DNA of 64,000 nt from Octopus sinensis (Eukaryota). The DNA lies in contig NW_021833116.1 in assembly GCF_006345805.1 (NCBI RefSeq), positions 150,621 through 214,620 of the forward strand, given 5' to 3'. Both the position numbers and the translations under genes were made by a program. This document shows, piece by piece, positions 3,182 through 48,776 of the stretch (position 1 is its first letter; each line of letters begins with the position of its first letter). The notes under the pieces are model-generated. The model made no database searches. It saw only the letters and a program-made list of their open reading frames with translations, and was not told the DNA's origin.

Positions 3182-5003
3182 ATGAGGCCGTATGCAGCAC
3201 AAATAATAGAAATCACTGACGACAACACATTCAAACTAAATGAACCTTTGCTACAAAAAATTCTCATGGCAAAAAATGTCATTGACAAAAAAGTCATGGT
3301 TCTTTCAGTTGTCGGCGCTTACAGACAAGGAAAATCGTTTCTCCTTAATTTTTTCCTCAAATATCTCTCCGCAAAAGTACTCTCAGCTTAAGATGAGACC
3401 ATAGGACAAAAAAAATTGGTTAGACAACAAGCAGGCTTTTGGCGGTTTTAGTTGGAGTGGGGGATGCAAACGCAACACAACTGGAATTTTAATTTGGAGC
3501 GAACCATTTTTATTGGTCAATTCTAATGGAGAAGATGTTAAATACATTTAAAATGATTTAAAACTACAGATTGCTGTTTTCTTAATGGACACCCAGGGAA
3601 CTTTTGACAACAAATCCACCCTCAGCGATTGTTCGACTGTCTTTGCTCTTAGTGGATTGATAAGCTCAGTTATGGTTTGTGCTTTGACACTATTATTTGC
3701 ACTGACATTGTGATTGGTGCATTGCGCTGATATCTGTTTATTTGTTAAAATCTAATAGATATACAATCTGTCCAAGAACCTTCAAGAAAATGATTTACAG
3801 AATTTGCGCATTTTTGTTGACTATGGGCGAATGGCTATTGAAAAAGACGATTCGAAGCCTTTTCAAGCACTGCTTTTTCTTGTAAGGGACTGGCAATATC
3901 TGGAAAGCGCAAATTACGGCTTTGAAGGAGGGCGTGTTCTACTTGAAGATTACCTGAAAGTGGCTATTTGTTAGTTATTGAGTCGAATAGACACCTGAAA
4001 AACAGTGCAGTGAATTAAATGATGTCAGGAAATTCATTCGTCGTAGTTTTGAAGACATTCAATGTTGTTTAATGCCTTATCCAGGAATTTCGGTGGCTAA
4101 CAATAAATTTAATGGAAATATCAAAGGTTCGAAATTTATAACTCATTGGGAAGATATTGAAACGGATTTTTTGGCTACTTTGTCAGAGCTGATTTCAAAG
4201 TTGTTTGATATGCGTAATATTGTAACCAAACATGTGAATGGCGCGCAAATCACATGTAAAGAACTCTTTGAGCACTTTAAGGTAATTTTTAAAATTAAAG
4301 TTGGTGTATTGAGAATGAATTTCAGCTTGTTAATGCCAAAATAACATTTTTAGATCTATTTTAAGACTATTAAAACAGAGAAGCTGACGACACATTATGA
4401 GGCGATTGCAAATGAGGAAAACCGGCTTGCGGTAGAAAATGCATTTAATATGTACAAACAGGCCATGAAAAAAGTTTGTATCGTCTATCTAGTTGTAGTT
4501 TTTGGAATCAAATTTATTATATGCTGATAAAAACAATCTCAGTGTTGCACACCAGAACAACATGCACGATACTTTGATAAATTCCAAATGTAGAAAAAGG
4601 GGCAGCGAAGAATTGATCAAGAATTTCGAATCTCAACTGAAATTAAAAATTTCGGAGTACAAGGAAGATTTAGATTATAAACACTCTGCGATGGAAGATG
4701 CATTTAATACGTACAAACAGGCCATGGATAAAGTTTTTTGCCAGTTTATCTATAGATCATGGAATTTAGATCATTGAATCAGAGAAACCATATATCGATT
4801 TAAAAAAATTCCGGGTTGATCACGAGAACAAACAGTGCTATTCGTTAGCAGCTTTTTCAACTTCTCAAAAGATGGGGACTGAAGAATTGATTGAGATATT
4901 AATAACTATACTGAAATCGAAAATCGCGGAGCTGTATAAAAACTATTCCGAATTAAATCTGTCCAATTTCAAGAGTTGCACGAGATCTCTAATTCGTGAT
5001 ATA
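3182..5003 (+). CDS. Atlastin-family (GBP/atlastin) GTPase domain plus two three-helix-bundle repeats; N-terminal part of a fusion gene
   Basis: G1 GAYRQGKS, G2 NTTG, G3 DTQG, G4 LVRDW. GT-AG introns at 3377-3404, 3537-3569, 3675-3758, 3960-3990, 4127-4153 (in-frame, may be retained), 4282-4353, 4474-4498 and 4733-4769 keep one frame. Confidence 0.88.
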
Positions 5004-6464
5004 CAGTGGGCGCAAAAAAAATCCGGTTTTCTTATTTTTCGAATTTTTCAATATAAATTTATATTATTTTTTTTTAATTTAGTATCATTTTGAAATGTAA
5101 ATCGAGTATGTTTTTAATTTTAAGTATTTTTTTATTTTTCATAGAGATATCTTGAATTTAATTTTAAAATGCGCAAAAAAACTCGGTTTTTTTAATTATT
5201 GAGTCTTTTATCTCAAAAATTTGAAATTGTTGTCATTTTTGTTGTTGTTGGATGTCGTGTATTTCAGAAATTGTGAAAGGACAAATTATTCAACTTTATT
5301 TCCTTAATTGGACATATAAACAAATTTCAGAAGAAGTAGAAATTCCCAGATCACAGTGGGAGATTACATACGTAAATACAAAAAATATGGAACAACACAG
5401 AGACTGTCCGGTTCTGGAAGACTAGGACATTAAATAATGATGATATAAATACTTTATTGACGCTTGTTTCTGACAATCCGAAAAAATCTTCCCGTTGCCT
5501 GTCAAAGGATCTTCATTCTTTGACAGGAAAAATCGTCTCAAAACGAACAATTGGGAATTATCTGAAACAAAAGGAAATATATTCACGTGTGTGTCAAAAA
5601 AAAACCGTATCTGTCTAAAATTAATATCGAAAAACGATATTCCTTGTCAAAAAAATTTATCGCACTGAATATGACGTCATGGAAATCAACTATTTTTAGT
5701 GATGAATGCTGTTTCGAAATTTTTAATCACAAAAAAAGGAATTTTGTTATAGGAAAAACAACACACGTCTAGAAAAATCGCACTTATCTCCAACTGTTAA
5801 ATTTGGAGGGGGAAAAATAATGGTGTGGGGATGTTTCGGGTATTATGGAGTAGGCAATCTAGTATTTATAAATGGAACTATGAACTCAGCAACTTATGTG
5901 AACATATTATCAAATAATCTGTGGGAGTCCGCTGCGAAAATGTGCTTGAATGAATTCATATTCCAACAAGACATGGCTCCTCCACACACATCAAAGATCA
6001 CGAAAGATTTCTTTGCCGAAAGAAGCGTCAAACTATTGGATTGGGCACCGCAATCGCCAGATTTAAATCCAATAGAACATCTTTGGGCATATATTAAAAG
6101 TAAATTGTACGAAAATCCTCCAAAAAAATATGCATGAGCTGAAAGATAAAATTATCGAAATTTGGGAAAATATGCCGAAAGATCTAATACAGAAACTCAT
6201 AAACAGCATGCCGAGAAGGGTGTACGATGTTTTTATGGCTAAAGGACGGCATATTAAATATTAATTTGACATTTTTTAAAAAACCGGGTTTTTTTGCGCA
6301 TTGTAAATTTAAATTGGAAATATCTCTTGAAAAAAATAATGAAAATAATCAAAATAAAAAAATAAGAGTTACTTTTCACTAAAATTTAAGATTAAAAAAA
6401 AATATTATATCGCAAATATAAAAAAATAGAGAAATTAGAAAACCGGATTTTTTTGCGCCCACTG
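5004..6464 (+). mobile_element. Tc1/mariner element, IR/DR type, frameshifted transposase
   Basis: Ends cagtgggcgcaaaaaaatccgg / ccggatttttttgcgcccactg; TA TSD at 5002-5003 and 6465-6466; inner repeats near 5170 and 6280-6300; DDE motifs IFSDEC, VWGCF, FQQDMAPPH, SPDLNPIEHLW. Confidence 0.92.
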
Positions 6465-6466
6465 TA

Positions 6467-7237
6467 ATATCAGATATTGATCAATTGATTTCCTGCAGAT
6501 ATGACCAGATCAAAATCCTCAAAAAGTTCATCGAAAAAGTTGAAGAATTTGCTACTGATTCCTGCGCTGGACCAGCTACGATAGCATCGACGGCCATGTT
6601 GTTATTTTCTCCGACAGCTATCATTGAAGCGACTGGGTTGGGTCTATCCGGCGTGGTTGTTGGAGGAGTGATCGGTATAAAAGGAATGATCAGTGACTTT
6701 TGCGATTCCAAAGATCTGAAGAAGATTATCGAACTTTCCTCGATAAAAGAAAAAAACCTAAGTAGAAGTTTACGAAAATTCGACGATTTTGTAAATGACT
6801 TGTCTGTCAATTTGAATATAACCCCCGATGATGCAATCGTGTTGATCACATCAGAAGGTATAGTGCGTACCTGCTATATTGCGAATAATATTATTAATAC
6901 GGCTAAAATGGTTCCGAACCTGATAAATATGGGTAATGTGATGGTTTATTTCGGATTGGATGTAATGGAAGCTGGGCTTGTTGCTGGAAGCAAAGCAGTC
7001 AACTTGGTGTTTGAAGGAGGTGAGGCGGTTTATCAGGTCACCGGAAGTGTAATCTCTGCCACTTCCAAAATTCTCGGCGGAGTAGGAGTTATCATCAGTT
7101 TTGGCGAGCTTATTTACAGCTGGTCTAAGGACAATCCGAACGTTTCATCCGCTAAAAAATGTGTGGAGTCGTTGGAGGACAATATTAAGTCTCTCAAGGA
7201 GAAAAAGTCTGGGTTTAAAAAAATTGATAGTTCCTAA
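6467..7237 (+). CDS. Apolipoprotein-L-like membrane/pore-forming domain; C-terminal part of the atlastin fusion gene
   Basis: In frame with 4770-5003 once the Tc1 is removed. Amphipathic helix, Gly-rich hydrophobic hairpin (ATGLGLSGVVVGGVIG), ~110-aa spacer, second hydrophobic segment (LGGVGVIISFGELIYSW), terminal zipper-like helix. Family call by eye. Confidence 0.6.
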   Translation: MSDIDQLISCRYDQIKILKKFIEKVEEFATDSCAGPATIASTAMLLFSPTAIIEATGLGLSGVVVGGVIGIKGMISDFCDSKDLKKIIELSSIKEKNLSRSLRKFDDFVNDLSVNLNITPDDAIVLITSEGIVRTCYIANNIINTAKMVPNLINMGNVMVYFGLDVMEAGLVAGSKAVNLVFEGGEAVYQVTGSVISATSKILGGVGVIISFGELIYSWSKDNPNVSSAKKCVESLEDNIKSLKEKKSGFKKIDSS

Positions 7238-7334: not shown

Positions 7335-7429
7335 CATCAAAGTAGCTAGTATCAAAATAGCTAGTCGACAAAACAGCTAGTATCAAAATAGCTAGTCGAC
7401 AAAAAAACTAGTGCATCAAAATAGCTAGT
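7335..7429. repeat. Short tandem repeat of ~14-18-bp units with core aaaatagctagt
   Basis: About six imperfect copies of the (a/c)agctagt core. Confidence 0.75.
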
Positions 7430-8173
7430 GAAGATTGGTTAGGTCAGTCCGCGACTTCCTTATAACAAAAATTGAAATTTTTTACTTCAATAATTCCATT
7501 GGCAAGCGGAGGCATGTACAAATATTCGGGAAGATTCACTGTCTTTACATTTTTTATTGGTTTTTTTACAACAAAAATTATTATTTTTTATCTAATTTTT
7601 AAGATTAAAAATGACCATTTCCTTTTATGGTCGGTAATATAATATCTCCCACAATCCATTTTATGCTGTTACCTTATTTGCATACTTACTGCACGAAAGT
7701 CTGACCAACATAGCCATCAGCCATGCGGCCACATTCTATTCTTTTTAATGATTAAGAGCGTCTTTAATTAAAACAGTGGCTTTTGGGAGTTGGCGAAATA
7801 TTCTTAGCCCACTAGTCCTCTTTTCCTTCGAAAACAAAAATTTTTATTTAATCACTAGTTTCAAAACTTATAATTTAGACCAAAAAAATCAATTTCTATC
7901 TTCCAAATCCATGACCAAATGTCTCAACTTTGCTTCAATGATTAGTAGTGATGCGCGCAATCGATACTACAAGGACGTTTGCGGATTCTGTAGAACAAGT
8001 TGAATTAATTGCCGGCCACTTCAAGAAATTGTTTAAATAAGAAAACAACGGAATTGCAGCATTTACTGGCCATCCTAGGAAATTGGAGTTAGAAATGAAT
8101 CTTGCAGAAGTGCAATTATTAATTAAAACGTTAAACAAATTAATAAAATTAAATAATAATAATTAAAACTACT

Positions 8174-11100
8174 ATGCAACGTGCTACTATCTCGATGTGT
8201 GCTCTACCTGGACAACAAGAAACTAACAATATTATTAATAATAATATACCTAGAGCAGGATGGACAACCGCATCGGAGAGACAGACGTCCGATGGCAAGA
8301 ACATCGTCTTTGCCATTGCAGAAGGGATCGAGTGCACGACCCGGGAGGACTGGGTTAAATCCGCCCTTTCCCAAGTGTTGGGAAGAGCTTCCAGGATGCC
8401 CAGAAATGGGTGGCCTACCCTGCTTCAGTGTTTCAATCGACGCTTTAGCTCGAACCTATCGTTAGATGCACTGAAGAAGCTGGCCAAGACCCCTCCTCCT
8501 GGCTCGCGGGGAGGACTGCCGCTGCGGTTACGCCGTCAGGATGCCCCCCGTGTTCTGAACAACACGAGCACCAGAGTAGTGAGTTATCGCTACTCTTGCA
8601 GGTTAAGGAGATATTTAGTAGGCATATCTCTGCGAATCGTGTTGTCCCCCTTGCGGACCGCAGAGTGACCCGAAAGATACCTCGGTGGCAACTCAGAAGT
8701 GACGTGATGGGTTGCATCAATCGTGCCATAGCTTACGCGATCGTGCGTGAGCCTCCGGAGACAATGGACGAGATTTCTCTCTATTTGTACTCGGCACAGA
8801 CAACCTATGATGAAATCACTCAGAGGCCTGCCCCAAAGAGTAGATGGAGAGAAAACATTGCCGCAAAAGTAGCCGCAAGGAAAGCCGAGCTGGAAGCGCT
8901 GACTGGGCACATTTTGAATGTGAGCAATGGGGTCAAGGGCAAGACTCCCCCCTTGGTGCGTACTTTACTTCGTCGGGAACGAGCTGCCAAATGGGACCTC
9001 AACGACTTGAGGCGTGTCCGGGCAGAGAGGGAGGAGCTGATTCTCGTTTATCAGAAGAAGCTCTCAACTCATGAGTCTCGGTGTCAGCGCAGGCGGGAGA
9101 ACAACCTGTTTGAATTTAATCGCAGGTCGTTCTATCGTCGGTTGCACGGAGAGACGAAGGAGGGTACCCAGCAAAAGGCCGAAATGCTTGACACATGGGG
9201 GAGTATGTGGAAAGCACGTCCTCGCAAGGGTGTGTCGTTTCCGTTTTGTGGACCCGATGCTCCCTTGATGACCGAGTCTTGTGGTGTCTCTGACATCCGC
9301 AAGAAGTTCGATGAAGCAGTAACCCGTCTCTCTGACTGGAAGACACCTGGGGTCGATAAAGTGTATAATTTCTTTATTAAAAATTGCAAACCTATCCATG
9401 ATTGCATGTGTCGAGCAATCGAACAGTTTACACTAGACCCTGGCTCGATTCCAGAGTGGTTATGTACTGGGGTCACTTATTTGATCCCTAAAGTAGATAA
9501 CCCTTCCGCTCCGACAGATTATCGTCCGATAACCTGTATGCCCAACCTGTACAAGTTGATGACTAAGGTGGTGGCTACTGAGGTCAGAAATTTCGTGGAG
9601 GTGAATGGGATTCTGTCCGAGAACCAGTTAGGTACTCGGCGGGATTGCCAGGGAGCTAAGGAGCAGGCACTGATCAACAAATGCCTCGCGAGAGCCCACG
9701 GAAACTCACTAGTGTCAATGTGGGTGGATGTGAAGAAGGCATATTACTCGGTTGATCATGCCTACCTCGTTGAGTGTCTGCGAAGGCTTAAGTTGCCAAT
9801 GTGGTTTATCAAATTTGTTGCAACTGTGATGGACAGGTGGAACGTGCATCTACATTACAACAAATGCGATATAGGCGAGGTGAAACTAGAGAAGGGCATA
9901 TTATGTGACATGGGGAACGCGTTACGCATGGGCAACCGGTTACATTTTTTGACCTTGTAGATGTCAAAATTAAATCCTTTGATTATCACAAATAATATTT
10001 TTTATGGGCCAATTATAAAGTTTAACTATGCCTTGTATTGATTTAAATTAGTTTTTGTTCATGTACTTAAATAATTTAAAAAAGTTATTTTTTTTAATGT
10101 TGGTAAACCTAAACTTATTGGAAAATTTTTAGCGTGCTAGATTTGTTTCTTGTAATGGCTTCATATAGAGGTTATGTCAAAGATTCTTCAGAGTATCGAA
10201 TTTTAAAAGATGCTTTGGAAAATAAATTCGCGGAAGATTCTTTTAGGCAAGCAAAATATAGACTTATAAAAAAGATCGAGAATTTTACAATAATCAATGA
10301 AAGGTACTCTATATTTACGATTAATGCGCAGATTGTATCTCAAATCTGACGATCCAAAGCTCGTCATTACTTTGGACAATGAAACTGAAATGGAGCATGT
10401 AGCTAAATCTCTACACGAATATTCACACGGTTTCAGTCCTAAATAATAATTACAAATGGATTTTAGCAGTCATCGATGTTTATAGTAGGTTTGTAGTAGG
10501 TCTCTCAACAATTTATTCAGATTTGCATTTGTCAGACCACTTTTCCATAAATCTTCAAAAGAAGTATGCAGCGTTTTAATCAAACCATCACCCGAAAACT
10601 CTCCAAAATGATAGATACGGATGAAAAAAAGTGGCTGGAAATTCTCGAAAAAGCAGTGTACTGTTATAAGAAGGCTGTACATTCATTTTCAAATCAGAAT
10701 CCTTTTGAAAGACATCGAGGGATAAGCGGAATAAACACTAATGTTGCAGGTTATAATTATAAAATTATGTTTTAGAAAATATTAAAAATCAATTTGAAAA
10801 TTCAGAGATTTGTTCAAATTTAGACTCAATTGAAAATTCAAGTATTTTAACTTTGAATTTATATTTAGGCGATTCTAATTGTCCAAGTCCAAAAAAATTC
10901 AAATTTAATTTAAATCCGATTGATGGAAACTCAGCCTACTATAAGGCAATGAATAGAAAAATGAATGTCCACAATAGTAAATACGAATTTAGTGTCGGAG
11001 ATAAAGTTTAGATAAATAATTATAGATAGGTTCGAGTTAAAAAAGATTATGGAACAAACCCTTCGTTGCGGTTGGATAAATTCGAGTCTCCATTCTATCC

Positions 11101-13118
11101 GACGGCTGAAATAATTAACATTTTGTCAAATAATCGAATCGAGGTAAATCAATTATTTTTATTTAATAGATAAAATATGCTAAAGGAAAGATATGGACGG
11201 TACCAATGGCAAGACTTAAAAATGATTAATTTTAATTTTTTTGTTAAAATGCATTATTCTTTGAAGTTATTCAATGATTAATAATTGACATCACAAGGTC
11301 AAAAAATGTAACCGGTTGCCCATGCGTATCCAGCCGCCCATGTCACATATTACAGGGCGACAGCATGTCTCCGCTGCTGTTTGTCCTCTGCCTAGAACCG
11401 TTGAGTAGAGTCCTCACTGCCCAATTCGAACAAATGTCGATCGAACATGAAGGAGGGTGTTTTAGCACCAACCATCTCATGTTCATAGACGACATTAAGC
11501 TGTTCGCTCGGTCTTCAGAGATCCTCCACTCAATGGGTAAAGTCCTGAAAGGTTTCATGAAGGCCGTGGGGTTGGAGCTCAACTACGACAAGTTGGCGAC
11601 TAACACCCCTGTGTGTGGTGACCTAGTCAAAGTCTTGGAGGAACACCAAGGATATAAGTATCTTGGTGTGGTTGAGAGTCCAGCCTTATTAATCACACCC
11701 GAAACGAGAAAGTGTGTAGTGGAGGGTGTGCGTAGTAGGGCGGCAATGTTATGTCAGACTCGGCTCAATGCACGGAACTTATTTCATGCCTTGAACGAGT
11801 ACGCCATCTCATTGCTAAACTACTACGTTGGCCTGATCGAATTCGAGCCGAGTGAGTACGATGAAATGGACCTTATTGTCCGAAGAGTACTCCGAGAGAA
11901 TCATGTCCACGTGTTGGCAAGCAATAAGGAGAGATTGTACTTGTCTCGCGGGCAGCTAGGACGTGGACTGAGTAACATCGTACACTTAAGTGAGCGAATT
12001 CTTACTAAGATGCACGACACCTTGTGGAGTGGGTCGAGTGTATCCCAAAGGAAGGCTGCCATCCTTGCTGCTGAAAAAGCGCGTGGTACACACCTAGGGA
12101 CCATAAAAGGCTATGTGTCGGCTAAGTATGGTCTAGGTGTTACCCAAGTTAATGTGAAGGAGTTGATCAAACTTCAAAAGGAGTCTTTAATTAAAAAGAT
12201 CAACTTAAAAGTCCTTCACAAGACTCTCTTTAGCAGCCTGGACAACCCGCACATTGACGTATCGTCGTCATCTACGTGGCTGAAATATGGGAATAACTCT
12301 CCCCGATCAGAAGGGTTGTTCTCATATTTGCAGGATAGAAACTTTTTTAATGGTCAACGGAAACAGTGTAACCACTGTAAGAGTAAGGCAATGACCGTTG
12401 ACCATTTAGCCACGAAGTGCGGGAGTATGTTTACCATGATTACAGATGGAGGCATAACGAGGTGGTGAGGTCCCTCCATCTTTTGCTCTGCAATAAGTAT
12501 GGCTTGAGGCGGTCCAGAAAGTTGCGAACCCATCGAGTTCAATCTGTGTGTGAGAACTCGCGGGTGTGCATTAAGGTGGATACCCCCATACGCACCTCGA
12601 TTGTTGTCCAGCACAACAGACCCGATATTGTGGTCCACGATAAGGTCACCGGGGAGATTGTTATCGTGGAGGTGGGCATCACGTGCCTAGACCGTTTGCA
12701 GATAGTGGAAGTGGAGAAAAGGAGGAAGTATGACCTCCTTGCAAACGAGCTAGGACTGATGCACCAGTGCAAAGTCCATGTCATCCCGTGTGTGATGACA
12801 TGGGATGGACTGGTCACCAAATACCACAAGCGGTACTTAAGACAGTTGGATGTAGATAAGTCTCTACAGGCTTATATACAGTCAACTGTTCTTAAGAGGA
12901 CTCTGGAAAGAGTCTCGTTTGATGCTCGCCGATCCAGCCCTTTCCTGACGTTTAGTCAGCAAGAGGCGCTGGACTGCACCTTCTCGAAGGTCTACAGTGC
13001 CAGAGAAGAGGAGGAAGAAGGGGAGGAGGTGCGTGGAGTGCCACCTTCTGCTCACTTCGAAGGCTCTGGACTTAGTTAGCAAAATTACTTAGTTAATTAG
13101 TTTCTTTTTTTAATAAAC
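8174..13118 (+). mobile_element. R4/Dong-clade non-LTR retrotransposon (copy A), near full length, split by a Ginger-like insertion
   Basis: 16-bp TSD aataattaaaactact at 8158-8173 and 13119-13134; RT motifs (YLIPK, YRPITC, QGAKEQAL, GIL^QGDSMSP, FIDDIKLF), RLYLSRGQLGRGL, CCHC and REL (RPDIV, EVGIT, EKRRKYDLL); ends in aataaa. Confidence 0.92.
9904..11347 (+). mobile_element. Ginger-like (Gypsy-integrase-related) TIR DNA transposon, internally deleted
   Basis: 63-64-bp TIRs (9904-9967, 11285-11347) with TGT...ACA ends; 5-bp TSD tatta; integrase remnants (LHEYSH; RFNQTI; VYCYKKAVHSFSNQNPFE; VRVKKDYGTNP after a 24-nt intron). Confidence 0.85.
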
Positions 13119-16109: not shown

Positions 16110-18240
16110 GAAAAGAATAATAATTTATTTGAAAAGTCCAGATAAAATTGATTTTTAATTATTGCGTCTGCTTTCAGTCGATTCTCCTCCTCTTCGAGCC
16201 TGAGCAAGTGTCTTCGACGGGTAGACTTATCCATTTTACATGGCAGTTCACTTTTGTGGTTGTTCTCGAGTCCGATTTAATTGCATGCTTCGCCGCTGTA
16301 GGAAGGAGTTTATACTCCGGGCGCATGCTTTCCAATGTTCTCTTGATCACGATTGACTGGATATAAGCTCGCGTAGATACCTGGACTTGTAAGGAGTTCT
16401 GGTATTGTTTATAGAATCTGGATGTTATTCCATCCCACGTAATAACCAACGGTATGATATTCACTTTTGCATTATGGATTACCTTCAATTCGTTCGCCAA
16501 AAGGTCATATTTATGTAATTTTTCTACTTCTACTTGCTTCAAGGATTGCTCAGAAGTAATCCCAATTTCGATAAGCGTAATAATATTCCGAACTTTGTCG
16601 AAGACAAAAATGTCCGGTTTATTATTACTCACTATAGTGTCCGCCTTGATGGTAGTGTCCACACGTATTTCGACCACCTCATTAGAGACAGTCGACTGAA
16701 CGGAGTGAGCCTTTAACTTCCGAGACTGTTTTATTCCATATTTTCGGCAGATGTGCAGGTGCATGCACCTTACAACCTCAATGTGGCGACGTAGGTAATC
16801 ACTGTTCAACATTCTGCCACATCTTGTAGCAAGATGATCCACAGTTTTTTTGGCGGCGTTGCAATGGTTGCAACAACCACCACCGTTGTCAAAGAATAAG
16901 TTGCGGTACTGAACCATGGTCCCTCCGACCTTGGAGAGTTGTTCCCATGAGATAACCACCAGGACGATTCTTTCAGATCCACGTCCAAATCATCATAGCA
17001 ATTGAATAAAATCGAGTGAAGTGGCTTTTTTCGTATCTGTTCAAGTATGTGCTTTCCTTGCAAATCCTTCAGAACATTCAGTTTGAGGCTTTCCGGAGTT
17101 GCAAATTGGTACTTTCTGCATAGGAATTCCTTGATAGTGGCCATATGAGTTTTCTTGAATCTGACGGTCTTCAGGATTCCTTCTCTCCTCAAACAATAGG
17201 AAGCCTTCATCTCAATGTCCTTGAGGAATTCAAGAAGCATTCGCTCGCTTTTACGCACCACAGAAACCAATCCTCTTCCTAGTCGGTCTCTTGAAAGATA
17301 AAGTCTATGTTTGTTTCCAGGTTTCATGTGTATTTGGTGGCGTATCAAAATCTTGCGCACATTCTTGTCGATATTCGCATGGTTCGATATCAATGAGCCC
17401 GATGTAGTAATTATACAACGATAATGCATGCTCATTGACAGCCTTGAAAAAATTTGCAGAATTTAGCTTCGAGTCTGCCAGGCTATTAGTTCTCTCCTCG
17501 ATTGCATCCGATATTGAGTTCATCGTGTCATTCTTCAAAACTCTGCTATCTTTGTCTTCCAATACTCCAAGGTAACAATAGCCATCAATCCCGTCAAGCA
17601 GCTTAGCTTTGCTACTCAACCCTTCAAGATTAGTTGCAGACTTTTCAGCGTTTTGCTCCAATCCGGCAGATCGAAAGAATTGATCAACCTCGACCATCAT
17701 CCTCATTACAGTGTCTTTCTTCCGAGCAAACAATTTTAGGTCGTCCATGAACAACAAGTGGTTCGTTGAGCATACCCGAGGACTATTGCCAGACTTGTCC
17801 ACTAGCACATTTGGGAATTTCGCATTCAATATTCTACTCAGGGGGTCCAGGACAAGAACAAAGATTTGCGGCGATAAAGAATCACCCTGCAAGATCCCTC
17901 TCTCCATTTTCACGTCACCAATCTCTTTTTGATTAAATCTCAGCTTGATCTTCCATTTCGTGACAATTGCCTTGATAAAATCCACAATCCAATGGGGGAG
18001 GCCGGAGTTATCGAGGACTTGATACAGAAACTCGTGATCGACAGAGTCAAAAGCCTTCTTTACATCAATCCAAGCAGAAGGCAAATTATTCCCATTTCGT
18101 TGATGGACACATTGGTTGAGCAATGCCTGCTCTTTGGCTCCTTGACACATTCTTCTCGTCCCCAATTGATTGTCGCTGATCAAATCGTATGCTTCAATGT
18201 AGTCCGTCAATTTTTTGTTCACCATTTTATGGAGGCCATA
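16110..18240 (-). mobile_element. R4/Dong-clade retrotransposon (copy C), 5'-truncated, frameshifted
   Basis: ORFs 17305-18225 (QGAKEQAL, GILQGDSLSP, FMDDLKLF), 16806-17435 (RLYLSRDRLGRGL) and 16174-16959 (CCHC, KPDIF, EIGIT, EKLHKYDLL). Confidence 0.88.
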
Positions 18241-18258
18241 TGCTATGCGATAGTATGA

Positions 18259-18740
18259 ATAAACAAGTCATTAATCCAACATCCCAAGATGTCGTAGATT
18301 TTATAAATAATCGTTAATTATTTTATCATTCGATTTTAGAAATTGTAAATCAGAGTTTTTACATCAACAATCGGATAACGTGGGATGATAACATAATAAT
18401 GTATGATGATGGTCCATTATTGGTATACATAAATAGTTGATTTAGATGACACCGAATTGGGATGTACATCAACCTCATGTCATTGATGAAATGCTGGCTT
18501 GTATTAGCATTAATCACAATGGAAAGTGGAAAACAGATTATTGTGGAGAATATAAAATTCCGGTGTGCTCTGACAAAAATTCGACTTACTCGACTAGCAG
18601 TATTCTTTTATCAAAATTGAATTTTAAAAAGGAAGCACTGCTCGAAAAGCAGGAATGGGATTCGGGATATTTATTGGGATAGCTGCGATTGTGGGAATTT
18701 CAGTAGGAATATTTATATTTCTCCGGTTGAAATACTTTTT
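18259..18740 (+). CDS. C-type-lectin-like domain plus transmembrane helix, 3' part of a gene
   Basis: NWDVHQP...C...GKWKTDYC...PVC pattern, then LLGIAAIVGISVGIFIFL after a 1-nt shift; micro-introns upstream; 5' end not found. Confidence 0.5.
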
Positions 18741-25070: not shown

Positions 25071-26413
25071 ATGAAGCACCTGATAATGGACAACGGAAGT
25101 AGTACAATAAAAGTGGGTTATTCCACCATGGACAAACCCCTGTGCCCCCTAAATGTCTAATACTCCAGAATAGTCCCCAATTCAATCACTAAATCCAAAC
25201 TCGTAAGAAACCGCCTTTTCATCGGAAATGAAATAGACGAAATCTCCAACACGAGTGGACTATATTTCATGACTCCATTCCACAAAGTGAGTCCCCCACC
25301 TCACCAAAGGGGTACATCACTAACTGGGAGACACAGAAACACATATGGGACTACGTCTTTGCCAAACCAGAACTAAACGTAGAACGACCGTGTAAGCCAG
25401 CAGGTCGACTTTGGGGACACGTCTCTGATCATCTCCGAACCATATTTTAATTTCGTACACTGCCAGGACTCGATGACTGAACTACTATTCGAGCACTACG
25501 GGTTTCCCTCAATCCTCAAAACGAATGCCGGCTGCATGAGTGCACATGGACAACACCACAAAGAACAGGCCCTGGTTATTGTGGACTGCGGATATTCCTT
25601 CACTCACGTCCTCCCCTTCATCGACCTCCGCCAGTATAAGGAAGGCACTTTGAGAATGGACGTGGGGGGCAAAGTCCTCACCAATTTTCTAAAGGAGGTT
25701 ATTTCCTATCGCCAGTTGATGGTGATGGGGGAGACCGTCCTGATGAACGAGTGCAAGGAGGACTGCTGCTACGTGTCCCTCGACCTCCACAAGGACTTGG
25801 ACATTTCCAGGTTGAGTGTTTGGGGGAGACTAGTCGACGCACTGAGGAGAACAGTGTGGCCAGGGACTATGTGCTTCCCGACTACTGCGACACATTTCGT
25901 GGGACTGTGAATGTCCCACACATGTCCTCCCTCAGTGACCGACAAGTCTGCCTGTCTGACTATTCCAGGCAATAAGAATGAACAACGAACGGTTTTTTGT
26001 GCCAGAACTGCTTTTTAACCCATCGATTGCTGGAGTTTAACCAGATTGGACTGTCGGAGGCAATTTATGAGAGTGTCAGTCGATGTCCTGCCGAGTTCCA
26101 CGAAGAACTGTTTGGGAATATTGTGTTGACAGGAGGGACATGTCGACTCCCCAACATGGCCACCCGACTGTTTGCTGTGTGTGTTAATCATAGACAAAAC
26201 GAGGTGCGTGCACGTGTGTCGACGGATTACGACGTGGTGGTGAGGGAGAGTGTGGATGAGTGAGTTATTGGTGTTACGAGTAGTCCTCTCACGGCTGCCT
26301 GGTCTGGGGGGACTGTCATTAGTCGGGATGCCGACATTCAGGACAGTTCCCTCAGTAAAGCCCAATATGAGGAATATGGCTTGCAGATATCACGTGAATA
26401 TTTTTCTGTTTGA
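25071..26413 (+). CDS. ACTR6: Actin-related protein 6 (SWR1/SRCAP subunit)
   Basis: LIMDNGSSTIKVGYS, GYITNWETQKHIWDY, ISEPYFNF, VDCGYSFTH, GGKVLTNFLKEVISYRQL, KEDCCYVS; multi-exon with micro-introns. Confidence 0.9.
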
Positions 26414-30019: not shown

Positions 30020-30690
30020 AAATAAAAAACTCCAGCCAACTGCTGATCAGGATGATTCTCCAACTCCAAACTGAATCATCTGAAATCACAGAGATGGAGC
30101 ATTCGAGAAGGATGATGCCTGAGCAGAAAAATCGTTACAAGCCCATCTGCGAGGATAAATACGAGAGGCTTCTGAACCAATCAAACCAACACAGACGTGC
30201 TTGTCTAGTGACTGGAAGATGCGAATCGAGTGGAGCTTGGATCAATGCACTCCCCGTTGATAGTGTCGGAACCCACCTTGACGACGATACTGTCCGCACC
30301 AGCACCAGACTTGGACTGGAGATTTGTCGGACTCACAAATGCTGGTGTGGGGCCACCGTCGATTGTTATGGACACCATGCTCTCTCTTGTCGAAGAAGTG
30401 CAGGACGATTTCCAAGACACAAGGCAATCAACGAAATTGTCAAGCGAGCCCTGGAGTCTGCAGGATACCCAGCCGTACTTGAACCGGTCGAGCTTGACCG
30501 AGGAGATGGAAAACGTCCTGATGGGATCACAATTTTCCCATTTGAAGAGGGGAAACCCTTAGTTTGGGACGCAACCTGTGTGGACACTCTCTGCCCGTCC
30601 AACATTGCCGGGAGCGCAGTGGACAGACTGTATGCCGCGGAAAAAACGATGAGGGCGAAGGAGAGAAAATATGAAGCGCTGCGAGATCGA
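30020..30690 (+). mobile_element. CRE-like fragment (zinc knuckle + REL) within R4 copy E
   Basis: ORF 30052-30711: SGAWINALP, CWCG, HALSC, RHKAIN, KRPDGIT, LVWDATC, KERKYEAL. Confidence 0.8.
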
Positions 30691-31429
30691 TTAATTAGAA
30701 ATCATTTATAAAGCCAAAGTCAAAATACTTCCGATTGTTATTATCTGGGATGCGATCACCTCCAAGTATTTTAAAATATATATGGATTTGATTGGCATTA
30801 AAGACAGTGTTCTGGCATACATCCAAACGATTGCATTAAAGAAGACGTTAGAAAGTATGTTTGTAGAATATAAATATGGTTTCGAAGACGTAATGACTAA
30901 AGCATTGATTCTCAACAAAGATTATGCAGTGTGAAACACTCACCAAAGTTTGTACATCTCAAAAAATAAGATGAATTGGCAATTCTGTGGCTAGCTTTTT
31001 TGATACGTTCTTTTAGGTAAAGACTTTAACAAGACTTCAAATATGGCTTTAAAAAAATGTTAAGTATTCTTTTCTTGTCTCTTAAGTTCGCTTTTATTTT
31101 TGACATTCTGCAATTTGGTATTTTTCTCATAAAATATTGTTTGAGTTTCAGTTAATTTACCGATTCCACAATCGCATCTAAAATTGGGAATAATGCAGAC
31201 GTTGAAAATTTTTAAAAATAAATTTTAAATCGCCGTAAAGTCCTTAAAATATTTTCTTTTGCAGTCAAAAGACACTGATTACAAAGTCAAATTAATTACA
31301 TAAAATACCAGTTTCATTGAAGTTGTGACTTGGTTCTGAAAAAGCACGTCTTTATCATGCTTAAATTTAAAATCCCTGTTCACCATAGTGTTCGAGGTCT
31401 CTCATCTTTAAATCAAAAAAGAACAATTA

Positions 31430-33804: not shown

Positions 33805-36800
33805 CAGTATGGTCCCAAAATAGTACACCCTTGTTTTTTTGTCGAAAAAGTCTTATATCTGCTAAAATAATACATTTATTTAATTATTTTTTGTGAATTA
33901 TATCTGTTTTAGAGTTTAATGAATTTTTCACTTTATAGAAAATCGAAATGAATTAATTATACATATATTTTAAAAAATTAATGAATTTTTAATGGTCCAT
34001 AAAAACTATATCCCGTTTTTAAACCAATAATAACTTAATAGTTAATCAGAAACTAAGCAGATCTCACTCCAGCTCGCTGATATCCACTCTCCTTCTCTTG
34101 GAAGAAGAGTCTACTTCCAGCTGCCTCTTACTCCCCACTACCACATCTGATTCAACCATTGCATCTTCTTTAGCATTCATTGGGTCGTCTTCATTTTTGC
34201 ATGCCATCTCCACATACCGGTTGGAAGCAGAAGCGTATTCTTCACCAGATACCTTCATTCCGTGCTTGTGTTCGATCATCATACTTTCGAACGTTCTTTT
34301 CAGTACAACGGATTGGATGTATGTCCTCGTTCCTGCTTCAATAGATAGTTTCCGAGACAACTCCATCCCATGTCATAACCACAGGAATTATTTTTACTTG
34401 ACAGCTATACAGAAACGAAAGCTCGCTTGCCAGTAGGTCATACTTGTGACACTTTTCAACCTCCACTTGCTTGAGGCGATCCTGTGAAGTAATACCCACT
34501 TCAATTAGATTTATTTCGTTTCTGACTTTGTCGTGGACAAAGATATCTGGCTTGTTATATTCTACTTTTGTTTCGGTGAGGATTGTACAATCAACCCTGA
34601 TTTCAACTTTTCCCGTCGACAGTGTTGACTGAACAGAATGTCCCTTCAATCGTCTTGCTTTTTTGAGTCCATACATTCGGCACAAGTTAAGGTGAATACA
34701 CTTCACAACTTCGTTGTGTCTCCGGAGATAATCACTGTTGAGCATTTTACCACACTGAGAGTAGCCATGTGGTCAACAGTTTTCTTGCTTTTCTTACAAT
34801 GATTGCATAATGAGTCAGCGGATGTAAAGAACAAGTTTCGATCTTGCAGAGACAATACATGCTTCACTTCGTGGCCCATTATTTCCATTAGATAGCCATT
34901 CTGAGGATGCAGGTAAATCAACATTAGGTTCATCCATACATTTGAAAAGCACAGAATGTAGTGCTTTAGAACTAATTTCTTTTGTAAATATTGTATCTGA
35001 TTGGACTTTAGAGACTCCATAGTAATACTCTTCTTATCAATAATTGCATATTTGGAGGATAGAAATCTCGCGATCATAGCCAAATGCCATTTATTCATTT
35101 TAATTACACGCAGAATCCCCGCCCTCCGTAAGCATATAGTTGACATATTTTCCAGACTCGTAAGGAACTGGAAGAGCATTAGTTCACTTTTGAAAGTAAC
35201 TGATGAAAGCCCTCTTCCAAGAGCTTTCCGGTTTAAATACAGTCTCTCTTTATTTGCAGGTTTGAGATGTAATCTGAGCGACGTAAGCAATTGCCGTATT
35301 TGTCTGTCAATATCATCAATTCAGAAGGTTCAATATTGATTAGCCCAATATAATAATTATATAGTGACAATGCATATTCATTTATAGCACGAAACAGATT
35401 CACACAGAGTTGAGTTTTGTTTTCGATAGCATAGTTATCCTCTTCTTAACATTCTCAAAGATAGAGTCCATAACTCTATTCTTAAGAACATTGCTTCCAC
35501 CATCTTCAAGTACACCCAAATACCGATATCCATTGATTCCGTCAATAGTCTTACAACATGATAATGATTCCAAATTAGACGCTGATTTTTCTGAATTCAT
35601 CTCCAAACCAACAATTTTAAAAAATCCGTTAACAGCTTCCATCATTTTGAGTAAAGTGTTGTTTGAGAGCAAATATTTTTAGATCGTCAATAAATAGCAA
35701 ATGATTAGTAGAATATGTTAACATATTGGGATCTTCCTGGTTAATTTCAAGTTTTGGAAACACGGAATTAAGGATCCTGCTTAGAGGATCTAATACCATA
35801 ACAAATAGTAAAGGAGACAATGAGTCTCCCTGTAAAATTCCTCGGTTTAACTTCACTGATCCAATTCTTCTACCTTCCATATGCAGCTTTACTGCCCACT
35901 TCTTAACTACGCTCTTCACAAAGTTTACGATCCAAAGCGGGATTCCAGAACAATCCAAAACGTGAAACAAAAAATCATGATCAACTGAGTCATATGCTTC
36001 TTCACATCGACCCAAGCAGAATAAAGGCCATTCCCGTACTCCTTGTTCAAACATTGGTTAATGAGAGCTTGCTCCTTGGCGCCTTGACAATACTTCCTCG
36101 TTCCAAGTTGGTTGTCTGAAATTAGGCCAAATGCCTCGACAAAATCAGCCAGTTAACATTAAAACATTTGGTGACAAGTTATACAATGTCGGCATACACG
36201 TTATAGGACGTAAGTCCTTCGGGGTTTCACAATCATCTTTTTAGGAATCAAATATGTTATTCCAGTGTAAAACCAACTTTCAGGCATGTACTCTCCATTA
36301 ATTATTCGGGTTATATCGTGACACAGAAATCCATGTAATGACTCCATCTTCTTAATGAAAAAGTTATATATCCCATCACATCCACATGCCTTCCAGTCAG
36401 GAAGATACTTAATAACATTTCAAAAAAACTCTTCCGTAAACTCTGGAAGCATATGTTCAGCACAAGTAGTTCGTTTTCCAACAACGTCATAAGATTGAGG
36501 CCTCCCATTTCTCTCGCTCCAGACTTTTTGCCAAAAAGAGACACATTCTTCATCATCAAATCCATACAGCGTCACTTCCTCTTTCTTTGTTAAATCTCGA
36601 TAGAATCTTTTTCGATTTAATTCAAAGCACTGATTATCCTTACGAAATTGCTTCCTTGAATTATGAACTTCTATTTTCTTATTGTTAATCCTAATCAGGT
36701 CTTGCAATAATATCTGAATCCTCGACAGCTCACCTTCTTAGTTTTCTTATACCCATAGCGACAGAGAACATCCATTACCTTTTGCTTTTCAGATGGAGGT

Positions 36801-44469: not shown

Positions 44470-45542
44470 AATTATCCTGGTGATAGGTTAAGACTGTCCT
44501 GGTCGATCAAAAGGAGTACGACAACTTTATAAAATCAGTCCTTTTACAAGGAGGGAATAATATCATAGAGCTGACTGTTGAGTAATGTGGAGGTAATATT
44601 GTGGTGATGTCTTTACATATATGTATAGTCTGTATCCCTCATTGCTCGACCAGTTAAAGTATTTTTGTACAATGTGAAGATCGAGTGGATCTGTTTGTTC
44701 TAGTTAAAAAAGGTTGTTTGACTTGAGTGAGTGGTAGATGTGAATGGAAAGAGCTATCGACAACTACCGTCGACGTTGCCATCCTCCGTGTTGTAAAATT
44801 GATTTGTAGAATCTAAATGTAACACACGTGTCATACCCCTCATATGAGGACGATGAGAATTTGAGGACAAAGAAGAATTATCATCAAGACCAGTTGACCA
44901 AGTGACCCCTCCTTGTTGTGGGTGGAGGATGAGAGGATTGAGTATGATTATGTATTGACGAGGACACACGACTGTATTATGACATTACGGGAAGTTATTC
45001 AGTTATTTGTGGGATGCACAACCCTAACAATGTCAAGTTAGGAGACTTCTTGGGATTGTTGTCACCGATGTTGGTTCATGCAGTGCTCGATCGGTACTTC
45101 TACTTTGAGAATGTGTAGAGTATTCCACGAAAAGAATTGTCTGTGGTCCATTCGTTGGAATGGTGATCCCAATTGTGTTGTCGAGGTTGTGGATGTTTTC
45201 GAATGTTAGGTTGGAGAAGATCTACAACAAGTTATTTACCAGAAGGACTGGTCTATACGAGGATTGGAGGAGAGTGCAGAAGAGGACGTATTTACAGTCA
45301 CTCGACCATCAAAGTTCATTTTTCGAAACAGCCGAGGCCAAATCACTGCGTATCGAGCACTGTGTGACGAGATTGACATGCGATATGTTGGTGGCCACTC
45401 TCATTCCCAGCTGTTAAGAGACCCAACTGTCGAATCACATGCCACGTTGGACTATTCGACGCTCGGAGTGATGGAATACACCGCTGATTTGTTGATATAT
45501 TACGTCAATAGACAGAACTGTATTGACTGGGTGACCATGTAG
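44470..45542 (+). CDS. Unassigned multi-exon protein-coding gene
   Basis: Open segments separated by ~25-nt GT-AG gaps; last exon ORF 45264-45542; conserved in copy 2; no family recognised. Confidence 0.4.
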
Positions 45543-45723
45543 ACTCCAATGAGTACAAAACGAGAATTAAGAAAACAGATTTAGGAAAAATGTTTATCTA
45601 CCAATCAATTTTTGTGTATGTTAATTTAACTCAAACATTATCGGGCAGTCAAATCAGTCATTTGCAGACCACAATAAACAATTATAAAAATACATGAATT
45701 TATATCTCAAAATATAATTCCCA

Positions 45724-47192
45724 TCAAAGTTTGAGCTTTTTAGAGCCCAATGCCATTTTCTTACGAGAAGTACAATTCGAAGACTTCCTCTTGACCCCCT
45801 CACAACTTTATTATTCTCAATCGCAGAAAATAACGCTGCAGACGACTTGAGTGCTTTACTATTCCCCCCCTCAGCCACAACCCGTTTAGCCTTAGACTCC
45901 CCGACCTTCACCTTTGGCTGAAAATGCTGCCGAATCTTCTTTTTCCTCCTCTCCCTCTTCTTGTCCGTCGCCGACCTCTCATCCTTCCCCACAACACGCC
46001 CACTTTTACTTTTATTCTGCCAACATAATCCCCAATCCCAACAGTGATTTCCTCAGGTGCCAACATTTCCGTGGCCGCAGACGCTGTGATCGGGACTTTC
46101 TCCTCCGCGTACATGGCAGCCATATTATTCACCACCACCGCCTCCGGTTGTGTCTGCACTACACCACACTCCACCAACACTCGCAGGAGAGTAATAAAAA
46201 CTGGACAGGGCATTCAGTTTGGAGAACAGGGAGTTGAGAGAGGACCTCAATTCGTTGTGTGTCTCCACCAACTTCTGCTCAGACTGAGACTGGGAGACAC
46301 TCTGTCTGGTCACCTGAGTTGATTCCTCGTATATCTCCGCCAAACTCTTCTTGCTCTTCTCCTGGTCAATGGGGGCCTCCTTCCTGTACTCACCAGTCCC
46401 CTCCACTGGCCGCACCTTCCTCTCCACGTCGTCGAAAACCTTATTTTTGATCCTCTCAATGATCATGTCCTCCAAAGTCTGGTTGGACTCCACCGTCGTG
46501 GGGGCGGCTGAGTCATCACCACCAAGACAACCCGGAATGGAGGAGTAGTCGAATTTTAGATTCTCCTCGACCAATGAATCGACCGGTCTCGCCCTGGCCG
46601 TCACTTCCCCCTTCATTTGCCATTTCGGACATTCCAGTGACTTGGCCTCCGCCTCCTTTATTATTTTAGACATCTATTTGGGGGTTTCGGGGGGTGGCTG
46701 CCTGTCTTTCCTGCTTCTGGAATGCCGTGTCCTCTTCCGAGGATATTTCCTCCCCCAAATGTGTGTCGTACAGTAAATCGTCATCCTCCGAACTCAACCC
46801 CTCTTCTACGTCCTTTTCGAACTGTTCGAAGGCTGCCTGCTCGTCCTCCTCTTCGGAGAGGGAATTGTCCGACTCGCACTTTATTTCCTGGTCGGTGGAC
46901 TGGTTGGAGATGCAGTCGGAGGTGGACTCTTCAATGGCCGGGGTTTCTGGCTGTAGGAAGAGTGTGTGGTTGGGAGGGGGGATTGAGGGAATCAAGTTGG
47001 TGTTGATGAGTTGAATTTGCTGCCATATCTGCTCATGGTCGAGGCCTTGGGTGTATAACTGAGTCGGCAGGGTTGTTTTTGTTGGATTGTATGTTTGACG
47101 TAATTTTGTGTACTTTTCTGCTAATTTGTCGAGTTGTTGGGAAGATTGGCTTGAATTAAGTTATTTAGACGATACCTACGAAAAGTGACCAT
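45724..47192 (-). CDS. MPHOSPH10: U3 snoRNP protein MPP10
   Basis: QGLDHEQIWQQIQL, WQMKGEVTARARPVDSL, DQEKSKKSLAEIYE, LFSKLNALS, EMLAPEEI, C-terminal KKLKL*. Confidence 0.92.
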
Positions 47193-47439
47193 TAGATGCA
47201 ACAAGAGTGAACGTGATGTTGATCAATTTTTATTTTAAAATATATTTTTGATTTATTTTTAATTTAATTATACTACAATTAAAATATGCATAAACTAAAA
47301 TATTTCACTTTACTTGTTTCCTTATAAAAACGTCAAAATTATATTAAAAAACTGTTTAGAAAATATTTATTTAATATTTTTATTATTTAAAATATTATTA
47401 ATTTTATAGCTGCAAACTCTATTCACGTGTGTCAAACAT
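47193..47439. promoter_or_regulatory. AT-rich divergent intergenic region (probable bidirectional promoter) between MPP10 and TOE1
   Basis: Head-to-head start codons 247 bp apart; repeated at 61568-61812. Confidence 0.5.
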
Positions 47440-48776
47440 ATGACCTCCGACATTCGGGCACTACCAGTCATCGACATAACAAAGAATAATTTTGAGGCAC
47501 TCACTCCCGCCATAATCCAAGCAATCCAAACCTCTTCATTCCTCGCCTTCGATCTAGTCCTTCATTCCATTAATTTGATAGGAATTGAGTGGCCTCGGCC
47601 AACAACATGTTTTAAAATGCCAGTTTAACCCACAAAACTATTTTTAGAGATATGGAAGAACGATATTTAAAGTTCTCCGAAATAGTAAAGACACGTGCAG
47701 TCCTCTCTCTGGGAATATCCGCCTTCACTCATCTGAAAACACTCAACGACGGAATCCAAAGCTTCCTCGTGCAGACATTCAACCTGTCCCTCCTCTCCCA
47801 AGACCTCTACGTGGTCGACCCCTCCTCCCTCCAGTTCCTGACCAGCCACGGATTCGACTTCAACCAGCAGTACTCCCACGGAATACCCTACCATGCTGGG
47901 AATGACCAGGTGGGAGTGTTGTGCTCATTTAAGGGCACTCCCAATCCAGTTCGGGTCCTTTTTGGCCAAATTGTGAGGGCAAGGAAGCCGGTTGTCCTCC
48001 ACAACGGATTTATTGACATTATGTTCATGTATCATCACTTTTATGCACAACTACCCCCCAAACATTCCACCTTCGTCGCGGACTTGACACAAATATTTTC
48101 TGGTGGTGTTTATGACACGAAATACTTGGCTGTGCATGTCCTTCACTGGGGTGTCTCATTCCTGGCATACCTTTTCAGGAAATGGTCGTTGTTCCTCTTA
48201 TTCGTAGTCAGAGACTCAACATGGAATATTGCGATGGGGGGAAAAGAGGGCTGGTTTTGACATTCCCGACTTATCCCCCTAATTCTTTGTCCGTCAACCA
48301 AATTTTGTGTCGCTTCGAACATTCCGCGGACAGTTATGTTTCCACGTGCAAGAAGAGTCCAATCTGCAAGCAATTCTCCGTCCGTTCTGTTTATAAATTG
48401 GCAGAATCACGGCTGGTGTAGCGCGGGAAATTCGAAATGTTCGAAATCTCACAACATCGACCTGGCAATAGACCAGGAGTTGTTCGGGGTTGTGGGAGAT
48501 GAGGAAGATGGAGAGGAGACCGGTGGGTTGTCCGACAGTCTTGGGGCACATCGGGCTGGTTTCGACGCGTTTATGACGGGCTACATTATGGGCTTTATTC
48601 TGTCGCGACACGGGAAGAAGAGGCCGACCTCATTCGAAGACTTTGGGTTGGCACATCAGTCCAATCGGGTGGCATTGACTGCCAAAGGCATTCCCTTGTT
48701 AATTACTAAGAGTGTCTATTCCAAGTACTCTTTACCACATCGTTCTAAGTATGATCTTATTTTCAGTTCACAATAA
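47440..48776 (+). CDS. TOE1: Target of EGR1 (CAF1-family deadenylase)
   Basis: FDL^ELSG, HGFDFNQQY, VLHNGFID, YDTKY, CCCH finger (C...GWC...C...H), HRAGFDAFMTG; 25-nt introns. Confidence 0.92.

Follow-up and report, generated by a model that had tools for sequence, protein, structure and literature searches.

An Atlastin GTPase Predicted to Continue in Frame into an Apolipoprotein L-Like Domain, Split by a Tc1 Element, on an Unplaced Scaffold of the Octopus sinensis Assembly

The 64,000-nucleotide stretch of DNA considered here (the window; positions 150,621 to 214,620 of contig NW_021833116.1, forward strand, RefSeq assembly GCF_006345805.1) lies on an unplaced scaffold (C9587) of the Octopus sinensis assembly and contains, at 3182-7237 on the plus strand, a predicted gene in which an atlastin GTPase is followed in frame by a helical membrane domain with distant likeness to apolipoprotein L (ApoL). 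The last exon is interrupted by a Tc1/mariner element, and with the element and one TA dinucleotide deleted the two parts form a single chain of 741 amino acids (aa). As judged from the sequence, this is a new domain architecture inside a known GTPase family, employing an ApoL-like family that is so far unnamed. When 5.8 billion proteins were searched with the 741-residue query, 47 matches were recovered, none of them to the tail and none a fused relative; in 46 of these, coverage of the query is about one half or lower, and only P0023 exceeds it (73% coverage, 26% identity). Full-text searches of the literature for ApoL together with GBP or GTPase fusions likewise returned no description of such an architecture, in agreement with a preliminary description of this DNA, which knew of no account of this arrangement.

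Gene Structure

The gene model was built by hand from the reading frames and comprises nine coding segments, eight within 3182-5003 and one at 6467-7237, with the Tc1 element between them. Seven introns interrupt the left part (28, 33, 84, 31, 72, 82, and 37 nucleotides [nt]), all of them GT-AG and all in phase 0. Exon 1 (3182-3376, aa 1-65) provides the start codon, an N-terminus resembling that of a paralogue elsewhere in the assembly (scaffold C7757; MKGYPAQIVF...), and the P-loop; exon 2 (3405-3536, aa 66-109) contains the switch-1 motif and shares its intron position with that paralogue, exon 3 (3570-3674, aa 110-144) contains the G3 motif, and exon 4 (3759-3959, aa 145-211) the guanine-specificity motif. 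The G domain ends in exon 5 (3991-4281, aa 212-308), which includes a nine-residue insert relative to ATL1. The three-helix bundle begins in exon 6 (4354-4473, aa 309-348) and is extended in exon 7 (4556-4732, aa 349-407) by an extra segment derived from a tandem duplication; exon 7 is 177 nt long and could thus be skipped with the frame kept. The left part of exon 8 (4770-5003, aa 408-485) encodes the last bundle helix (KMGTEELIE...ELYKNY, homologous to ATL1 359-438) and a linker ending in ...SLIRDI, while the right part (6467-7237, aa 486-741) encodes the ApoL-like helical membrane domain and ends with ...KKIDSS and a TAA stop codon. Deletion of 5004-6466 produces ...CGT GAT ATA / ATA TCA GAT..., that is, SLIRDI-ISDIDQ, in frame and free of stops. 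The preliminary description had foreseen such a frame-true junction and a single-chain product, the length of which, given there as about 750 residues, is corrected to 741.

The C7757 paralogue, a canonical atlastin with 53-57% identity to the fusion protein in the G domain, has six introns of 23-31 nt, each located at a position that also bears an intron in the gene in the window (as read from the sequence). The one surplus intron of the fusion gene falls in the duplicated segment. Because the intron positions of the two genes match, the hand-built model receives independent support. In the paralogue the last exon passes unbroken from the closing part of the bundle to the membrane anchor, just as exon 8 of the fusion gene runs from the bundle into the tail.

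The Atlastin GTPase

The N-terminal region matches the Pfam GBP N-terminal domain (PF02263) with 219.9 bits against a cut-off of 21.1 over residues 14-289. Among solved structures the strongest match is human ATL1 (E 5.5e-93, about 45% identity over 317 residues), with GBP2 (E 4.7e-11) and GBP1 (E about 1e-5) far behind; the GBP C-terminal domain GBP_C (PF02841) scores 16 bits, under its cut-off of 24.3, and the C-terminus of the fusion protein has no CaaX box. Residues 1-485 of the predicted protein are thus an atlastin and not a GBP proper, and of the earlier designation as an atlastin/GBP-family GTPase the first half stands and the second does not. All G motifs are intact, namely GAYRQGKS at 45-52 with the P-loop arginine (Arg48), RNTTGI at 88-93, DTQG at 116-119, and VRDW at 186-189, as had been stated for the motifs and the arginine. 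With ATL1-3 and Drosophila atlastin the predicted protein has in common the GBP-type G domain, the P-loop arginine, the RD motif, and the three-helix bundle, and with the canonical C7757 atlastin the placement of its introns. The bundle itself is partly duplicated in tandem: nucleotides 4428-4477 and 4687-4736 match at 88%, the start of an intron included, and the flanking matches are collinear. Residues 393-472 make up the second copy, which is the one aligning to ATL1 359-438. The two helical-bundle repeats of the preliminary description are accordingly real as a repeat, in the form of a partial tandem duplication.

Atlastin-mediated fusion requires a hairpin of two transmembrane (TM) segments and a C-terminal amphipathic helix. 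Unlike atlastins, the fusion protein has neither, and an unrelated domain of 256 residues stands in their place. Other atlastin-like GTPases have also exchanged their tails. Coiled-coil tails are found in a mite protein (P0008) and a chironomid protein (P0017), PX domains in P0026-P0046 (many metagenome proteins), and in the basking shark protein P0023 an atlastin-like G domain and a duplicated helical region or bundle precede a TM-rich tail that is unlike the ApoL-like domain. These coiled-coil, PX, and TM-rich tails indicate that tail exchange is a known evolutionary mode of this GTPase family, although the ApoL-like domain occurs in none of these relatives. Tandem duplicates of the G domain are present as well among atlastin-like proteins, in a tick and in Macrostomum (P0001 and P0002 among the listed relatives).

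The C-Terminal Tail and Its Family

That the tail might simply be a diverged atlastin TM anchor was considered and rejected. Its profile aligns to canonical atlastin tails with an hhalign E-value of 0.32, its Kyte-Doolittle maxima are 1.8 and 1.6 as against 2.3 in the true TM hairpin of the paralogue, and it belongs to another family. The resemblance of its GPATI to the TPATL of atlastins is, by the same comparison of tail family with atlastin tails, a coincidence. The claim that a domain of about 256 residues replaces the atlastin TM hairpin consequently withstood this objection.

With the tail as query, HMMER was run exhaustively over 1.8 billion representative proteins and retrieved 26 relatives, the best of which (P0048, 286 aa, E 5.6e-22) aligns over tail residues 2-250, its full length. 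Those that are full-length stand alone, with chains of about 270-330 residues, and the fusion tail is about 20-35% identical to them. They share a signature, ...ADxIYSWxxxNPxxxSA..., with an invariant tryptophan, from which the group may be called the IYSW-NP family (P0048, P0050, P0055, P0070, and others). W219 in tail numbering is invariant in the family and S218, P224, and G207 are nearly so; all four are kept in the fusion tail. The predicted residues 486-741 thus belong to a eukaryotic protein family whose members otherwise stand alone. No Pfam model covers the family, its members bear no source annotation, and direct sequence searches of the tail against Pfam and PDB returned no match.

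The genome and the metagenome collection were searched for this family with its consensus and with a narrower alignment (A6) as queries, and the consensus recovers the fusion locus itself at E 4.5e-29. A single-exon family gene is present on the 146-Mb chromosome record LR722969.1, which we take to belong to a teleost fish assembly, and two-exon genes with their own start codon occur on one 858-kb contig and on four metagenome contigs. In the flanks of the six stand-alone loci that were fetched no GBP-type domain was found. A protein search with the family alignment recovers eight proteins, and one with P0055 recovers P0055 alone. Two members of high GC (guanine plus cytosine) content from metatranscriptomes, P0079 and P0080, carry a C-terminal RING-like zinc finger, so that the domain has entered other fusions, too, in unrelated eukaryotes.

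The AlphaFold2 model of the tail, computed from an alignment of 24 sequences, is all-helical: an N-terminal helix leads into a hairpin rich in Gly, Ser, and Thr, after which come a long helix, a second segment of weak hydrophobicity, and a terminal helix. This bears out the layout proposed at the outset (amphipathic helix, Gly-rich hairpin, spacer, second hydrophobic segment, terminal zipper). A single-sequence prediction was uninformative, with a predicted local distance difference test score (pLDDT) of 34. The hydrophobic helix-loop-helix hairpin lies at 6569-6706 (aa 520-565) and aligns to the TM hairpin of ApoL (APOL1, about 177-228). The second, weakly hydrophobic segment (7049-7123) ends in the family signature, here ...GELIYSW, with the family-invariant Trp704. 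The C-terminal amphipathic helix (7142-7231) is predicted with a pLDDT of about 87 and has a weaker collinear match (E 3.4e-4) to the C-terminal leucine-zipper helix of ApoL.

Probable Remote Relationship to Apolipoprotein L

Among the relatives of the tail, no Pfam family other than ApoL (PF05461) turns up repeatedly at close to significant scores, in each case below the cut-off. P0055 matches its profile positions 65-253 at E 3.5e-5 with 23.8 bits (cut-off 25.9), the family consensus matches at E 3e-4, and P0075 at E 0.14. A two-exon homologue reconstructed from locus L040 has no ApoL match; set against the near-match of P0055, this makes the link at the level of Pfam inconsistent between members. 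When the whole assembly was scanned with PF05461 the fusion locus was not found, and three matches at chance level appeared elsewhere.

The tests made by way of the family, comparison of profiles included, are positive, though weak to moderate in strength. The ApoL reference consisted of APOL1, APOL2, APOL3, and APOL6, whose sequences score 278-431 bits against the Pfam model in its full length, which makes them sound representatives of ApoL. Against these four the family alignment (A5) gives an hhalign probability of 90.9%, an E-value of 1.2e-6, and a score of 53.3 over 65 columns. The alignment takes in the pre-hairpin helix and the Gly/Ser/Thr-rich helix-loop-helix and falls on APOL1 152-230. 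When the ApoL columns are shuffled within blocks of 20, sixty trials score 19.0 +/- 3.6, with a maximum of 29. The C-terminal parts taken alone also align collinearly (E 3.4e-4, probability 38%; with both profiles reversed the same regions form the top match, at E 6.9e-8), pairing ...VADxIYSW... of the family with ...LDVVYLVYES... of ApoL, and the terminal helix with the terminal zipper.

The likeness to ApoL (PF05461; APOL1, APOL3, APOL6) takes in, in the same order, an amphipathic helix, the flexible hydrophobic hairpin, and a spacer of helical character, and may extend to a second hydrophobic segment and a zipper-like terminal helix. In contrast to ApoLs, the tail family falls below the Pfam cut-off, has a signature of its own (...ADxIYSWxxxNP...) that ApoLs do not have, and is without the N-terminal four-helix bundle (profile positions about 1-64), all matches beginning at position 65 or later; in the fusion protein it is the atlastin bundle that directly precedes the hairpin. 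On balance the tail is likely a distant homologue of the ApoL core that lies outside the Pfam family as now defined.

The Tc1/mariner Insertion and the Probable Unity of the Gene

The element on the plus strand at 5004-6464 is 1461 bp long and is bordered by a TA at 5002-5003 on the left and the duplicated TA at 6465-6466 on the right. The inverted repeats at its two ends, each about 190 nt long (5004-5195 and 6275-6464), begin with CAGTG. In all 12 of the 12 full-length genomic copies compared, the termini are identical (TA, CAGTGGGCGC...GCGCCCACTG, TA) and the flanks unrelated, so that the boundaries follow from comparison of copies and were not judged visually. The assembly contains at least 25 full-length copies with 97-99% identity, from which it follows that the family is young and that the insertion in exon 8 is recent. 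Fragments of the transposase match the Pfam domains HTH_Tnp_Tc3_2 and DDE_3. With its TA target duplication, inverted repeats, these two domains, and many near-identical copies, the element is an ordinary Tc1/mariner element; it differs in that the transposase of the copy at 5004-6464 is frameshifted and split among several frames. With the element present, the frame of exon 8 continues for 29 codons into it and then meets a stop, and the allele bearing Tc1 would yield a tail-less protein of 514 residues unless the element were excised or spliced out. Three other scaffolds (C10438:47301-48766, C10729:34014-35478, and C9061:57670-59134) have one Tc1 insertion in common among themselves, with identical flanks, which indicates that the unplaced scaffolds include redundant haplotigs or several individuals of a co-sequenced organism.

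It is conceivable that the two sides of the element are separate, with a truncated atlastin paralogue on the left and an independent ApoL-like gene on the right, or that they were mis-joined at a collapsed Tc1 copy. TA stands on both sides of every Tc1 copy, so the TA pair alone proves no simple insertion, and the abundance of near-identical copies, the redundant haplotigs among the unplaced scaffolds, and the stand-alone condition of all other family members found would each suit such an explanation. It demands, however, two independent hits in exons with exactly complementary domain boundaries and the same frame: the last atlastin bundle helix lies directly to the left of Tc1, and the family alignment begins at the second residue to the right of the junction. 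In the frame to the right, the only start codons ahead of the hairpin would lie within atlastin-homologous sequence. The missing halves are also absent. The two atlastin tails in the assembly each sit on their own gene, with no orphan tail, and a search of its 2.7 Gb with the family consensus found no second ApoL-like copy; an assembly chimera was rejected on these grounds. The assembly presumably rests on long-read sequencing, and reads of that kind would cross a repeat of 1.5 kb. Separate genes or a mis-join are thus highly improbable, and 3182-7237 is, on the evidence of the sequence, one gene.

An allele or paralogue free of Tc1 was looked for genome-wide, and only stray fragments were found. 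One, at C10228:33938-34229, is a 296-nt fragment (97-98% identity) that runs from upstream of exon 1 through intron 1 into the first part of exon 2 and is situated among other repeats. Another, at C8596:15143-15556, covers exons 4-5 with 81% identity and contains stops.

Probable Source of the Scaffold

The published O. sinensis assembly comprises 13,516 scaffolds and 2719.2 Mb, 86% of it in chromosomes (PMC10700109). The Tc1 element and a long interspersed nuclear element (LINE) of the window, the latter with copies 99-100% identical, are found on unplaced scaffolds only and never on chromosome-scale ones. Two complete atlastins are present in the assembly, one on chromosome C1, where the matched exons extend across about 15 kb, and the other the C7757 gene with introns of 23-31 nt; taken together, the introns of the window gene and of the C7757 paralogue range from 23 to 84 nt. 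The repeat distribution, the short introns, and the second complete atlastin suggest a co-sequenced animal with short introns, and the scaffold is probably not octopus DNA but that of such a metazoan. The dicyemid Dicyema japonicum inhabits the renal sac of O. sinensis and has a LINE-rich genome with 36.7% GC, 49% repeats, and a mean intron of 38 bp (PMC6736024); the GC content of the window is 37.9%. From GC content, repeats, intron size, and host, a dicyemid is the best guess as to the source and a reasonably probable one.

Proposed Mechanism and Alternative Explanations

Atlastins act by GTP-driven dimerization of their G domains and crossover of their bundles. The explanation that we somewhat favor is that the gene is a lineage-specific atlastin paralogue in which the anchor and tail were exchanged in the last exon for an ApoL-like domain, giving GTP-gated action on membranes. 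Binding of GTP would cause dimerization of the G domains and crossover of the bundles as in atlastins, and dimerization would draw two ApoL-like modules together. Their weakly hydrophobic, flexible hairpins could then enter and destabilize bilayers, with GTP-gated tethering followed by fusion or local permeabilization of an internal membrane as the outcome. The ApoL-like module would in this way do what the lost atlastin tail did, both as an anchor and in destabilizing the bilayer. ApoLs are argued to work by way of a flexible hydrophobic hairpin able to permeabilize or fuse membranes. Their TM hairpins show flexibility and conditional insertion, and a fusogenic action has been proposed for them, as Pays argues for that of APOL3 (PMC10937811), and it is this argument that makes the exchange of an anchor for an ApoL module mechanistically plausible. 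Whether the gene, before it was hit by Tc1 or in alleles free of it, encoded a working single-chain machine in which an atlastin drives membrane insertion of the ApoL type is a further step, and a doubtful one.

Several observations count against the proposed tail exchange and its membrane function. With respect to the ApoL assignment, PF05461 finds nothing in the window tail at E<=10, and the tail alone aligns to the ApoL profile at an hhalign E-value of 0.12; the term ApoL-like used from the start thus fails the direct Pfam test and holds as a remote likeness between profiles. A reversed template, moreover, scores 39.9, which implies that part of the hhalign signal is a generic hairpin pattern. 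The AlphaFold2 model has a mean pLDDT of 66, its three long helices being confident and its hydrophobic parts not, and a Foldseek comparison of the model with PDB yields no match with E under 1 (long-helix alpha-pore-forming toxins and ExbB rank first, at TM scores of about 0.15-0.2, and are of no evidential weight). With respect to the gene, the sole copy in the assembly is the one split by Tc1, no transcript or protein of this species was present in the databases searched, and there is no orthologue, so that selection is not measurable. The locus lies in repeat-rich DNA and fragments of the gene stray elsewhere, a setting that a recent and possibly non-functional chimera would fit as well. 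What is known here is a single, transposon-disrupted copy read from sequence, and its value is limited to that extent.

The last of these points leads to the explanation that an atlastin duplicate and an intronless ApoL-like sequence were joined recently, by rearrangement within repeat-rich DNA, into a chimera that never functioned, or that the gene is a decaying pseudogene, with the Tc1 insertion as part of the decay. The position of the gene between retrotransposons, its internal tandem duplication, and the fragments of exon 1 on C10228 and of exons 4-5 on C8596 are all compatible with such a history, as are the disruption of the only copy and the availability of the canonical atlastin for housekeeping. 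The state of the sequence speaks against this: Tc1 aside, all 741 codons are open, the seven introns have undamaged splice sites, and no G motif is lost. Although its identity with the paralogue is down to 53-57%, the GTPase is free of stops, and the retention of G207, S218, W219, and P224 in a tail at about 20-35% identity to its relatives implies long-term constraint. A chimera without function or a pseudogene is for these reasons unlikely, but it is to be taken seriously as a rival.

The joining of a dynamin-superfamily GTPase to an ApoL-like hairpin domain also invites comparison with human GBP1 and APOL3, and the protein could, along the lines of the preliminary description, be a cell-autonomous defense effector, a single-chain equivalent of the two in which the GTPase drives assembly on a foreign membrane and so delivers a lytic domain of the ApoL type. 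ApoL hairpins are able to kill bacteria and trypanosomes (PMC10937811), and the tail family is patchy and variable between lineages, with RING-like fusions in some members (P0079, P0080), as is often the case in families with immune roles. Both systems would pair a dynamin-superfamily GTPase with a membrane-active module of the ApoL type on one membrane, the two being covalently joined in the fusion protein. GBP1 and APOL3, in contrast, are separate interferon-induced proteins and the GBP is farnesylated, whereas the GTPase in the window is an atlastin, a fusogen of the endoplasmic reticulum (ER), lacking both GBP_C and a CaaX box; the analogy is loose for that reason. The family is single-copy and unexpanded in the assembly, the locus shows no sign of immunity, and the likely host of the gene is a parasite of about 30 cells with a reduced gene set (PMC6736024). 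A role in defense is accordingly decidedly unlikely, and the explanation retained is that of an atlastin paralogue with an exchanged tail.

Neighboring Sequence

About 100 nt 3' of the stop codon is a tandem array (7338-7429) of a 31-nt unit, AGCTAGTATCAAAATAGCTAGTCGACAAAAA, in 2.7 copies. Copies of non-LTR (long terminal repeat) retrotransposons, which encode a reverse transcriptase and a C-terminal nuclease-like domain, are located at 934-2669, 8153-13079, 16174-18267, 30022-30711, 34703-35320, and 54168-54731; one such family, with copies 99-100% identical on many scaffolds, must be active now or have been so very recently. A segmental duplication of 4.15 kb with 97.6% identity occupies 45500-49638 and 59888-64000. 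From translations of open reading frames (ORFs) alone, the duplicated segment holds a putative MPP10-like ORF on the minus strand and a putative CAF1/PARN-like ribonuclease ORF on the plus strand, and in the second copy (59888-64000) the frames are broken. The only other clearly conserved cellular gene fragment noticed in the window is an actin-related-protein-like exon at 25383-25910, a potential marker for the phylogenetic position of the source organism.

Implications

The scaffold draws attention to DNA, probably of a parasite, within the unplaced part of an octopus assembly that has been published. The IYSW-NP family, widely scattered in eukaryotes, would extend the ApoL-like fold class past the current Pfam model. 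A natural chimera of atlastin and an ApoL-like domain would, furthermore, be a ready-made test of whether a module of the ApoL type can replace the atlastin tail, and of whether GTP-driven dimerization can gate membrane activity of the ApoL type. If the proposed function holds, the protein would be a natural covalent form of a partnership between a GTPase and an ApoL that is known only in trans, in human immunity, and ApoL-like hairpins could supply the working part for a fusogen or permeabilizer of the dynamin superfamily.

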